From: Vitrella brassicaformis CCMP3155
Taxonomy: Eukaryota > Protista > Chromerida
Reading direction: 5' to 3'
Length of the DNA stretch: 60,625 bases
Assembly: GCA_001179505.1 (NCBI GenBank)
Contig: CDMY01000516.1
Coordinates: forward strand, 1-60,625
Positions 37,895 through 41,924 of the stretch are shown here, piece by piece (the first letter of the stretch is position 1; the number at the start of each line of letters is the position of its first letter). The notes below the pieces were generated by a model that was not told the DNA's origin, searched no databases, and saw only the letters and a program-made list of their open reading frames with translations. Both the position numbers and the translations under genes were made by a program.

Positions 37895-38697
37895 GGCTGA
37901 TGGGACAGAACGACAGCCTATTACTGTTCAAAAAGTGAAACCGTCTCTTACCCAATCCGCTTGTGCGTTAACGCCATTTGCAATGCCATCATGCGACGTG
38001 TTTCAGCCATGTCCATCCGCCACCCCCATCCATGCATGAGTGAATTCGCAGAGAGAAGCAAGCTGAGAAGTAATTGAGCATGCTCATCGGTCCATTCCAT
38101 TCATTCCCTGAGCCACTGGCTGCTGGCCTGGCTGTTGTCGCTTCGCGTGCACCTTTGACCCATGCATCAGACATCAGATGTGTGTACAGCAGCAGGCAGA
38201 CAGACAGACAGACATCGAGGCATGCCCGGCTTGGCTAAATTCGGGCGTGCGGCCAAGGAAGGAAAAGGCAAACAGGCGGCAAGACAGACAGACAGACAGT
38301 ACATAAGGGTTACGAATCTACACACCAAGCATCCAGACAGACCTGTGTGTGCATCATCATGACCGAATTGACTTGACGTCCCCTCCTCTCGCCCCGTCGA
38401 GTCGGCCAGCCACTCCCCCTCCCTCACACACACACACACACACGCCACATCGCACTCACTCTCCTGTCCCTGGCCGCACTCTCCCAACAGCAGCACACAG
38501 AGACGGCCAGACACCCGACCCGGTGTGGTTACCACACGCTTGTATACAGACAGACATACGTACAGAGCTCGAGAGAGAGAAAGGCACGGAAAAAGCCGTC
38601 AGTAAGGCAGTAAGTCGCTCGGTCAATTGGTCGGCCGATCGGGCCATCGGCCGATGGATGGATGGATGGTGGGCCGGTCGATGCATCCATCCATCCA

Positions 38698-41311
38698 TCA
38701 GTAAGGTTGGGCTAGGTGTCTATCTCGCGGCTTGCGCCGCGCTTTGGTGTCGCTCCCACCGCCACCACTGCTGCTCCCGCTAACAGCACTAACGCCACTA
38801 ACGCCGCTGGCAGCACCAGAAGCACGCCGCTTCTCGTTCGCCACGGCAATGGAGCCGTCTGAAAGACACACACAGAGAGATGGGCTCTGCACTGGGTGGT
38901 GTGTGTGGCGTGGCAAGTGGCCGTGATGGCTTGGCTTGCTCACCCTGGTTCATGACGACCTCAGTCATCTTCCGGAATGAGTATCGCATGTAGGTAGCCT
39001 CGCGGCTGCCCTGGCTGCGACGGGCACCGTTGAACTCGCGGCTGATGGCCGTGGCACTCAGATCTGACACACAACACGACCCACCCAAAGGCACCAGATG
39101 GCATTGAGGGTCCTCCTTCTCTGGTTGGTTGGGGTGGGGAGTACCTACCGAGTGCCTTGGCGGCATCCCGCAGTGAGGTGAAGTATCGCTTGCGAGCCTC
39201 ACCTTTCTCGTCCGTCCAAGTCACCCTGCACACAACACACACACACCACCAACACGAGGGAGGGACACGATGAATGGGAATGCACCACCCGTCCCCCTCT
39301 CTCTCGGCCTCTTTCTTCCTTACTCTAGCGGCGTCGAGTTGGGCGAGCTGGCGTCCCCCTCAAAGCACACAATGCGGTCGCCGATCTCCACCTCCCGCAC
39401 CAGCAAAGTGATCCCGGCAGGCCGACCCACACGTGGGGCACACGAATTGTCAAACGGCGAGGGGGACCGCTTGGCCTTCCGGGGGGAGGCCGGTGACACC
39501 TGCGACAGCACCTCGTGGAAGGGGTGGTCCGGCGCCGCGTCGGCCGCAGGAGGAGCAGCAGCAGGCCGGTCGTGTTGCTGCTTGTTGGCGGGCGACGGTC
39601 CGCGGCTCATCTGGAAGGGGTTGACGGGGTGGACGCGGGGAGGGGGCGAGGGGGGCAGAGCGGTGGAGCAAGGTGTGATGCCACCCACCTGTTTAGTTTG
39701 ACACACGCACAAGACAGACAGAGAGAGATGGTCGTTTGAGTGCATTGCATGGGGTGCTGTGCTGGTGGCGATGCCGCCCCGCCCCGCACCTGTGTGGGGT
39801 TCATGAATTCCGGCTCGTCGTCGCTGGTGGGGATGCGGTCGAAGGCATACACATCACGGTCGCTGATCTGCTTGCGCTTGTTCAGCAGCTGAGACAAATG
39901 AGACTCAACTGCACCACACCACACCACACCAGACACAAACAAATCCCACTGAAATCAGCACGGAGTGTGCCGTTCATTGTGTCGTTCATTGTGTGTCCCC
40001 GCCCTCCCCACGTGTACTGATATTGAGGAAACGTGAGGCCTCTCTCTGCGTGGAGAAGTAATGGCACTTGCCCGTCTCCCGGTGCACGGCGCGTATCTTG
40101 AGGGGCGGCCGCCAACCCAGATACCCGCCACACCCAATTCCAATCCCAATCCCAGCCCCAGCCCCACCCCTGCCCACTCCGCGGCCCTTGCCCTTCCCCT
40201 CCCCAGACGCGTCGCCCTCTTCTTCAGCCCCCACTTCTTCCGCCTCGTCAGGCTGGCCGAGCGTCGCAAGCAGGATCTTCTTGTCGTCGGCGGCCCCCGC
40301 CCCCTCCTCCCTCTCACGCCTGGTCCGTCGGCTCCTGGTCGGGCGACGGCTGAGCTGCCTGGAGACGTCAGCGAGCACGGCCAGGTCTGCGTGGGCGGCC
40401 TCATCTTGCTGCTCGTCTTGGTCCCCCTCGGGAGCCGCCATCTCCACCTCCAAGTCATCCGACCGACCCTTCCTGCTCGCGCGGCCCCGCTGCGCCCGCG
40501 TGACCCGTCTGCAGTCCCTGTTGGGCTGCTCACCCTCCTCATTGCTATCGTCTCTATCCACCGCTCGTGTCCTGCGCTGGCCTCTCAGGCCCTTCTGACG
40601 ACCGGTCGGCTGAATCACGGGCGGCGCCTCGATGCGCAGAGGGCGTCGCTGCGGTGTCGGGTCGTCGTCTTCTGAGGATGAGCTGTCGCCACTGGAGGCA
40701 CTAGAAGAAGCGCTCGGCTGGTCAGGAAATTTACCCCCTCTGCCGCAGTAGCTGTTGATGGTCGGCTGGCGGGCGGGGAACAGCATTGACGAGCGGTGGA
40801 CGGCGGGGCTGGGGGCGGGGGGAGGGGCCAGCCAGAGATTGGGGTTGTGTGAGGGCATCTTCATGGCAGGCGGGTGCGGCGGCTCCATCCACACACCGTC
40901 GTGCATCGTGTGTGGTGGCCCCCTCAGCACCGCTGCTCTTCCCCTCGCGAAAACCTGACCCCCATCGAAAAGAGCCATCGAGTGGTCGCCCATCGTCGGC
41001 GCGTCATCCATGCCGCCGACGAAGCCCCTCGTCGGCGGGTGGGGCTGGAACGGGTCGAAAAAGTAGCCAGGGTGGTGATGAGGGTCGCCGTCATGGTACG
41101 TGTGTGCGAAGGGGGGCGGGTAGTCGTGCGAGGGAGGGCTGACGGGGGGCGGGGTGGAGAGGCGGAGAAAGCGCCGTGAGTGTAGCTGATGGTCCAGCTC
41201 CTCTTGTCCGTCAAAACCGCCGTCGTCTCGCATGTCCACATTCAGCTCCTCCCACCCAGGGATAGAATCCCCCACATGGCTCCAAAAGTCAGCCATCCCA
41301 CTCGATGCCAT
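38698..41311 (-). CDS. Low-complexity protein with two NUMOD1/IENR1-like helix-turn-helix motifs (putative DNA-binding protein)
   Basis: Motif 1: KIRAVHRETGKCHYFSTQREASRFLNI..ESHLSQLLNKRK..VYAF. Motif 2: PLEVTWTDEKGEARKRYFTSLRDAAKALDLSATAISREFNGARR..YSFRK. Both are assembled across GT-AG introns. The rest is Pro/His-rich, acidic and Arg-rich. Confidence 0.75.
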
Positions 41312-41924
41312 GCTGACTGACGGCAGACCACCAGCGCCTAGCCGCGCCAACGCCCACACGTCTGCGAGCCTCAGACGTCGACAGCCGGAGACGGACGGTC
41401 AGTGGTCTTCAGGAGAGGGCTCCAAACGGGCCCACCGGGGTATCTCAGGGCGGCCCGGCGTGCGGCAGAGATGCCAACCGAGGGAAGGACAGCAAGAGAT
41501 GGGCAGAGTGGACCAGCAGCGGTGCTGCCCAATGGCCAGGCAACAGCAAGAAGGCTGTAGTGGTATCTCTTGTGGCCTGCGAAGGGCCTTCACAACGCCG
41601 ACGACACGTGTGGACCGAAATAGATACCCCGGGGAAGAAATGGACGGACAGATCGGGTCAAGGGAGGGGAGCAGAAGGACAGAAGGAGAGAAAGAGGCGA
41701 AAGAAGACGAACGTGTGTGTTCGGTTCAGGCGGGTGGAGCCTGGTTTTAGTGGAGGCATAAAACCAAAAGGGTCACCGGTCCGAAATAACACGCAGCGGA
41801 CTACACTCCATCAGGGATCGTCGGGCCACGCGTCCTTTCAATCGGAGGCTGTTTCGAGTCCTAGCACCCGTAGATCAGCGACTGACCCGTCACGAGGCGG
41901 CGGCTGGAGACGAAGCCGCATGAT

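Follow-up and report, generated by a model that had tools for sequence, protein, structure and literature searches.

Contig CDMY01000516.1 of the chromerid Vitrella brassicaformis CCMP3155 (GenBank assembly GCA_001179505.1) carries, between positions 38698 and 41311 of its first 60,625 nucleotides (the whole stretch of DNA that was analysed; hereafter, the window), a minus-strand gene of six exons. It was read directly from the DNA as one frame interrupted by five GT..AG introns; the coding sequence of 2136 nt (711 codons plus the stop) runs from the ATG at 41311 to the TGA at 38698–38700, exactly the limits proposed in a preliminary description of this region. The product contains two copies of a short motif, each cut by an intron, that could be divergent relatives of the helix-turn-helix (HTH) modules known as NUMOD1, IENR1 and I-HmuI_NUMOD-like. 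Such modules anchor homing endonucleases of the GIY-YIG and HNH classes to DNA; here, they would occur without a nuclease.

A transcribed and spliced six-exon gene

The features of the gene are listed below in the direction of transcription.

Exon 1 (E1), 40018–41311, minus strand: 431 whole codons plus one base, with the ATG at 41311
Basic cluster, 40307–40348, minus strand: RRPTRSRRTRRERE, residues 322–335
Motif 1, N-half, 40019–40099, minus strand: KIRAVHRETGKCHYFSTQREASRFLNI, at the end of E1
Intron 1, 39909–40017, minus strand: 109 nt, phase 1, GT..AG, CA-rich
Exon 2 (E2), 39790–39908, minus strand: both ends fixed by a spliced contig
Motif 1, C-half, first 25 residues of E2, minus strand: ESHLSQLLNKRKQISDRDVYAFDRI, the putative recognition helix and last strand
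Exon 3 (E3), 39324–39688, minus strand: Pro/Ala-rich linker with a strand-like end, GITLLVREVEIGDRIVCFEGD
Exon 4 (E4), 39149–39225, minus strand: both junctions confirmed by spliced contigs
Motif 2, N-half, all of E4, minus strand: VTWTDEKGEARKRYFTSLRDAAKAL
Exon 5 (E5), 38944–39063, minus strand: junctions confirmed by spliced contigs
Motif 2, C-half, first 31 residues of E5, minus strand: LSATAISREFNGARRSQGSREATYMRYSFRK
Exon 6 (E6), 38698–38858, minus strand: Gly/Ser-rich tail with the TGA at 38698–38700
Basic cluster, 38719–38745, minus strand: KARRKPRDR, in the E6 tail

Eight public runs contain the stretch. We have compared two RNA-like runs (X1 and X2, classed as RNA by guess) with two DNA runs (X3 and X5) over 38300–41700, the evidence for splicing being contigs and not reads. 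Contigs of X1 and X2 skip exactly the intervals 38859–38943, 39064–39148, 39226–39323 and 39689–39789, with CT..AC ends on the plus strand, whereas the DNA runs are without such joints, and one X3 contig spans the entire stretch unspliced. The spliced contigs thus establish introns 2 to 5 to the base, among them intron 4, located between E4 and E5. The two motifs, as they had been described earlier, are built by splicing: the junction that assembles motif 2 (intron 4) is exact in the spliced contigs, while intron 1, which assembles motif 1, is bridged by no contig of X1 or X2. The end of one spliced contig falls exactly on 39908, a further 15 letters being unplaced, which fits an acceptor at that position. 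Six GT donors upstream of 39908 would preserve the frame. The modelled donor at 40018 (GTACAC) is not the most canonical; it and the donor at 40012 (GTGGGG) both retain motif 1 and differ by two residues, which the latter would add in the turn of the motif.

Unspliced RNA-like contigs cover 38300–38858, 40316–40525 and 41143–41662, and the first and last of these imply that the transcript spans at least 38300–41662. The ATG at 41311 is the first in the transcribed leader, since the minus strand has no other ATG over 41312–41700; an in-frame TGA lies upstream, at 41399–41401. The locus is a genuine nuclear gene of V. brassicaformis, both transcribed and spliced, the product of which (about 711 amino acids) is mostly intrinsically disordered. 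Pro, Arg, Gly and Ala each make up about 10% of the protein, in a region with a G+C content of 0.60–0.64. E1 is mainly of low complexity, with Pro/His-rich and Gly-rich sequence and acidic runs; residues 41–170 form the Pro/His-rich stretch, and a Gly-rich run directly precedes motif 1. This composition agrees with the preliminary description, in which the motifs are set in disordered acidic and Pro/His-rich sequence. The protein has two Arg-rich basic clusters, and RRPTRSRRTRRERE could, judged from sequence alone, be a signal for nuclear localisation.

A perfect 16-nt inverted repeat, (GATG)4/(CATC)4 with a 15-nt loop (38653–38699), begins at the stop codon and enters the 3′ untranslated region. 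In each of the four runs the depth over this interval is raised 10- to 30-fold, and contigs frequently break there, so that it is a dispersed genomic repeat. In addition, CA-rich, microsatellite-like tracts occur in intron 3 (39230–39260) and intron 1 (39909–39940), just inside the acceptor ends; they too have high depth and contig breaks, and give rise to false “joints” between them in the DNA runs. The genes flanking the six-exon gene are unrelated to it. A neighbouring NYN-TLDc gene was considered as part of it and rejected: it is a separate transcribed gene, and the six-exon gene has its own 3′ untranslated region, reaching to at least 38300.

Two intron-split motifs and their NUMOD-type likeness

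Motif 1 reads KIRAVHRETGKCHYFSTQREASRFLNI followed by (I)ESHLSQLLNKRKQISDRDVYAF, and motif 2 reads (E)VTWTDEKGEARKRYFTSLRDAAKAL followed by (D)LSATAISREFNGARRSQGSREATYMRYSF, each being cut by a phase-1 intron; both are present in the six-exon model as they had been quoted in the preliminary description. In all six translated frames of the 60.6-kb window, a strict form of the helix-1 pattern, [FYW]x[ST]xx[EDQ]A[AS]xx[LFIMV], has two occurrences only, namely motifs 1 and 2. The N-halves of the two motifs are alike, with a local alignment score of 29 that is reached by 0.3% of 5000 shuffles (p about 0.003). Read directly, the distance from the Ala of helix 1 to the Ile/Leu of helix 2, both conserved, is 11 residues in motif 1 (with the donor at 40018), in motif 2 and in the natural NUMOD1 consensus.

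The likeness to NUMOD1 (PF07453; IENR1 in SMART), as found, e.g., in T4 MobB, lies in the order and spacing of the predicted elements: a hairpin with a Gly turn, an aromatic-x-Ser, E/D-A-A within a helix, L-N/D-I/L as a short turn, I/L-S-x-x-L/F-N-G/K in a second helix, basic residues and an aromatic strand, in two copies per protein. There are also differences. The modules of the gene are without the conserved Q-Y-D and W-K-Y signatures and without a nuclease domain, their copies are about 190 residues apart and not 10–30, and they occur in a nuclear gene in which each is cut by a spliceosomal intron.

Two side observations touch the motifs. About 15 residues upstream of motif 2, the end of exon 3 encodes GITLLVREVEIGDRIVCFEGD (39364–39426), which resembles a further beta-hairpin turning at a Gly; the stretch could belong to a larger module or represent a third copy in degenerate form, and has no profile support. 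At position 40123, run X5, which is filed under another organism label, has C where the window has A, which turns codon 397, TAT (Tyr), into GAT (Asp) in one contig (depth 11); this codon lies in the G-G-Y-L-G-W stretch just ahead of motif 1.

Sequence and fold tests were run on single-exon pieces. With the 40 amino acids at the end of E1 as the query, tblastn against 2.3 Gb of phage DNA returned a single match (12 of 33 residues identical; E = 0.7, which alone is not significant). It corresponds to residues 178–210 of a 246-amino-acid GIY-YIG homing endonuclease of Streptococcus phage Javan355 (QBX17447.1), and the matched stretch runs into the Pfam I-HmuI_NUMOD-like domain of that enzyme (PF22083, residues 191–236), hairpin on hairpin. 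By our estimate, NUMOD-type domains form a very small share of the translated phage database, so that a chance match there, in register, is unlikely. This best and only database alignment covers the linker, the hairpin and the start of helix 1 (I-x-A-x-H-x-E-T-G ... A-S); by eye, it extends without a gap into exon 2 (S-x-[IL]-x-x-x-L-N), a continuation that BLASTP does not recover. Motif 2 has no match with the Javan355 endonuclease, and tblastn of E2, E4 and E5 against the phage DNA gave none at all. The Javan355 domain, used as the query in its turn, returned near-identical copies only in a locus search and seven records only with tblastn.

A feature search of the ESM-Atlas with 33 amino acids of the motif 1 N-half, in which scores below 0.9 are leads only, found as the nearest named clusters NUMOD1 (0.84), I-HmuI_NUMOD-like (0.81) and I-TevI_DNA-bd (0.81); a further neighbour (0.80) is a NUMOD1 cluster, the recorded taxa of which are mostly Nucleocytoviricota. 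The ten best matches all belong to one shared family or clan. The same kind of search with E5 led to a phage integrase (0.87) and was judged uninformative.

For the profile comparisons, relatives of T4 MobB (two Pfam NUMOD1 domains; 92.6 bits) were collected and, together with 153 viral loci, giant-virus contigs included, gave 229 distinct natural repeats; smaller sets held 21 and 23 repeats. Against these natural repeats, the NUMOD1/IENR1 match claimed in the preliminary description has weak support in the N-halves and none from hhalign in the C-halves. With hhalign, the N-halves align in the expected register, on helix 1 of the natural profile, both against the 21 repeats (P = 0.003 for E4 and 0.04 for the other) and against the 229 (P = 0.0026 for the N-half of motif 2, with 0 of 200 shuffles as good, and P = 0.0046 for that of motif 1, with 2 of 200), and profile against profile P is 0.001; the alignments comprise only 10–14 columns, that is, the F-x-S-x-x-E-A stretch by which the motif was picked, and are in part circular. 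E5, the C-half of motif 2, aligned out of register. Scored by glocal half-profiles on the composition of the window itself, the four pieces fall within the top 1–4% of 1777 six-frame peptides (E2 17th, E4 18th, the end of E1 37th and E5 74th), each aligned as expected. For the helix-1 block, the N-halves rank 2nd (E4) and 4th of the 1777.

Of the fold that had been proposed, a beta-hairpin plus HTH, modelling covered single-exon pieces. AlphaFold, run without an alignment on the 50-amino-acid end of E1, predicts two strands (IRAV and CHYF) and a helix (QREASRFL) with a predicted local distance difference test score (pLDDT) of 71–80, so that the N-half of motif 1 models as a hairpin and a helix. 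E5 folded alone is one long helix, typical of isolated peptides and uninformative.

Weighing the alternatives

Several results weigh against a relation to NUMOD-type modules. Pfam and PHROGs scans of all exon pieces at E ≤ 10 found no family of any kind. This includes nuclease domains, as the preliminary description had noted, and the modules stand outside the usual NUMOD1 context (C-terminal to a GIY-YIG or HNH nuclease), which is typical and not strictly defining. Pfam NUMOD1 (curated cut-off of 22.8 bits) was blank with hmmscan at E ≤ 10 for E1, its 33–50-amino-acid end, E2, E4 and E5, and I-HmuI_NUMOD-like (cut-off of 27 bits) was likewise blank at E ≤ 10 on the exon pieces. In a control, four natural 26-amino-acid N-halves scored, each alone, 39.7, 28.2, 32.7 and 17.1 bits on Pfam NUMOD1, so that the exon-level test is informative; it fails here, the N-halves of the gene each lying within one exon and yet going undetected. 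Likewise, our own profiles (of 23, then of 229 repeats), run with local HMMER against the six-frame window, rank the pieces of the gene with the background, as does a glocal half-profile on standard background frequencies, and with the half-profiles no piece of the four comes first among the peptides of the window. The C-halves have no mutual similarity in local alignment and are without support from tblastn, PDB search or hhalign. PDB sequence searches with single pieces and two-sequence profiles gave chance matches only (such as OspA, eL37 and YqzG), and fold searches with the 50-amino-acid model (PDB with Foldseek, viral models and Atlas shape) gave no significant match; on the favourable side, in the non-significant Foldseek list against the viral models, several rows of low root-mean-square deviation are HNH endonucleases. 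Moreover, the tblastn and ESM-Atlas results concern motif 1 alone, the motif with the unbridged intron.

It is possible, if somewhat doubtful, that chance or convergence explains the likeness: the gene would then be a lineage-specific, largely disordered orphan, with two hairpin-helix segments that have no relation to the modules of homing endonucleases and would not have to bind DNA. Significance is reached by no family model and no profile, whereas natural half-domains do reach it; E1 and E3 in a word search, and E1 in an exhaustive phmmer search against 1.84 billion cluster representatives, found no relatives; the C-halves lack internal as well as external similarity; and the stretch that looks significant with hhalign is the same short pattern that selected the motif. 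Tblastn, language-model features and profile alignment all reach the pre-specified NUMOD group in the right register, however, the pattern is duplicated inside one protein, and all four pieces are among the top 1–4% at the expected alignment. The word and phmmer searches did not return the gene's own protein either, which implies that the spliced product, or at least its exons 1 and 3, is absent from both protein collections; the six-exon gene may be unannotated or modelled differently in public annotation. A transcribed locus with a long frame that encodes no functional protein, i.e., a chance open reading frame in GC-rich DNA or a decaying gene, would also be without homologues. The G+C content does favour long open frames and the depth of the RNA contigs is low, but we hold this to be very improbable: six exons keep one frame over five GT..AG introns, four of which are confirmed by spliced contigs, the frame opens, downstream of an in-frame stop, at the leader's first ATG, and the motif is duplicated.

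AP2 (PF00847) is a small sheet-plus-helix DNA-binding module of HNH endonuclease origin, the domestication of which gave apicomplexans and chromerids their main transcription factor family, ApiAP2 (PMC4501334). That the modules are very divergent AP2 (ApiAP2-type) domains, and the gene a further member of the large chromerid ApiAP2 family, appears unlikely. In the AP2/ERF consensus, the helix also starts with F-[ST]-[ST]-x-x-[ED]-A-[AS]-[RK]-x-[LY]-[DN], and the motifs, read directly, share this start (F-[ST]-x-x-x-E-A-A being common to both); furthermore, Y-L-G-W-R ahead of motif 1 recalls the first AP2 strand, and one Atlas shape match is to an Arm-DNA-binding integrase domain (template modelling score of 0.53), which we take to have an AP2-like fold. 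ApiAP2 genes are, besides, abundant and fast-evolving in Vitrella: chromerids have 136 of them, and a single Vitrella cluster holds 50 (PMC4501334). The Pfam AP2 profile, however, has no match at E ≤ 10 on E1 or its 33–50-amino-acid end, the pieces that would hold three strands and half the helix, and the single-sequence AlphaFold model of the E1 end has two strands, not three, and the start of a helix, leaving Y-L-G-W unstructured; the remainder of the helix region falls in E2. The helix region is four residues longer than in AP2 and has an HTH-like turn: the interval from the Ser after the conserved aromatic to the Gly/Lys that ends helix 2 is 22 residues by our count, the length that the natural NUMOD1 consensus has too, against 18 residues in the AP2/ERF consensus. 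The variant Y397D in one run alters the Tyr of the would-be first strand. The ESM-Atlas neighbours of the motif 1 N-half are all of the NUMOD type and none is AP2, and the sole phage match falls within a NUMOD-like domain.

Three weak lines (tblastn, ESM-Atlas and hhalign) thus converge on the NUMOD group, not on AP2. Homology of the modules with NUMOD1/IENR1 is plausible and below formal significance, with support mainly from the N-half of motif 1; that they are very divergent relatives of the NUMOD1/IENR1/I-HmuI-NUMOD-like HTH modules, here without a nuclease, is the leading explanation, which we regard as about as likely as not.

A possible second domestication

If the modules are of the NUMOD type, the protein would carry a module of about 55 amino acids (beta-hairpin, helix, turn, helix and last strand) twice, the copies being about 190 residues apart. 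The second helix of each would enter the major groove of DNA, and the long flexible linker would allow a bipartite site to be read by the pair. Effector or interaction functions could fall to the disordered parts, acidic and Pro-rich, and the Arg-rich clusters could be signals for nuclear import. That the protein binds DNA, is nuclear, has a role in regulation and belongs to a family are all predictions.

Among the IMG/VR loci, relatives of a NUMOD4-HNH_3-NUMOD1 endonuclease (P0003) with 47–73% identity (loci L094–L143) occur on many giant-virus metagenome bins (GVMAG contigs), which implies that NUMOD1 repeats circulate in viruses of protists. Giant viruses, on whose contigs proteins closely related to the natural NUMOD1 set of this analysis are encoded, are a possible source. 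Tentatively, and with some doubt, we propose that a NUMOD/IENR1 HTH module was domesticated in chromerids, possibly via giant viruses, into a nuclease-free family of nuclear DNA-binding regulators to which this gene would belong, in parallel to the domestication that produced ApiAP2. A literature search found no paper on nuclease-free nuclear NUMOD proteins. On present evidence, we offer this domestication as a reasonable hypothesis and not as a finding.

In apicomplexans and the algae related to them, few sequence-specific transcription factors are recognised beyond ApiAP2, itself derived from the domains with which homing endonucleases bind DNA. If the proposal is true, a second endonuclease-derived DNA-binding module in nuclear, intron-bearing and expressed genes would add a class of regulators to this lineage, and would be a second example of the evolutionary route taken by ApiAP2.

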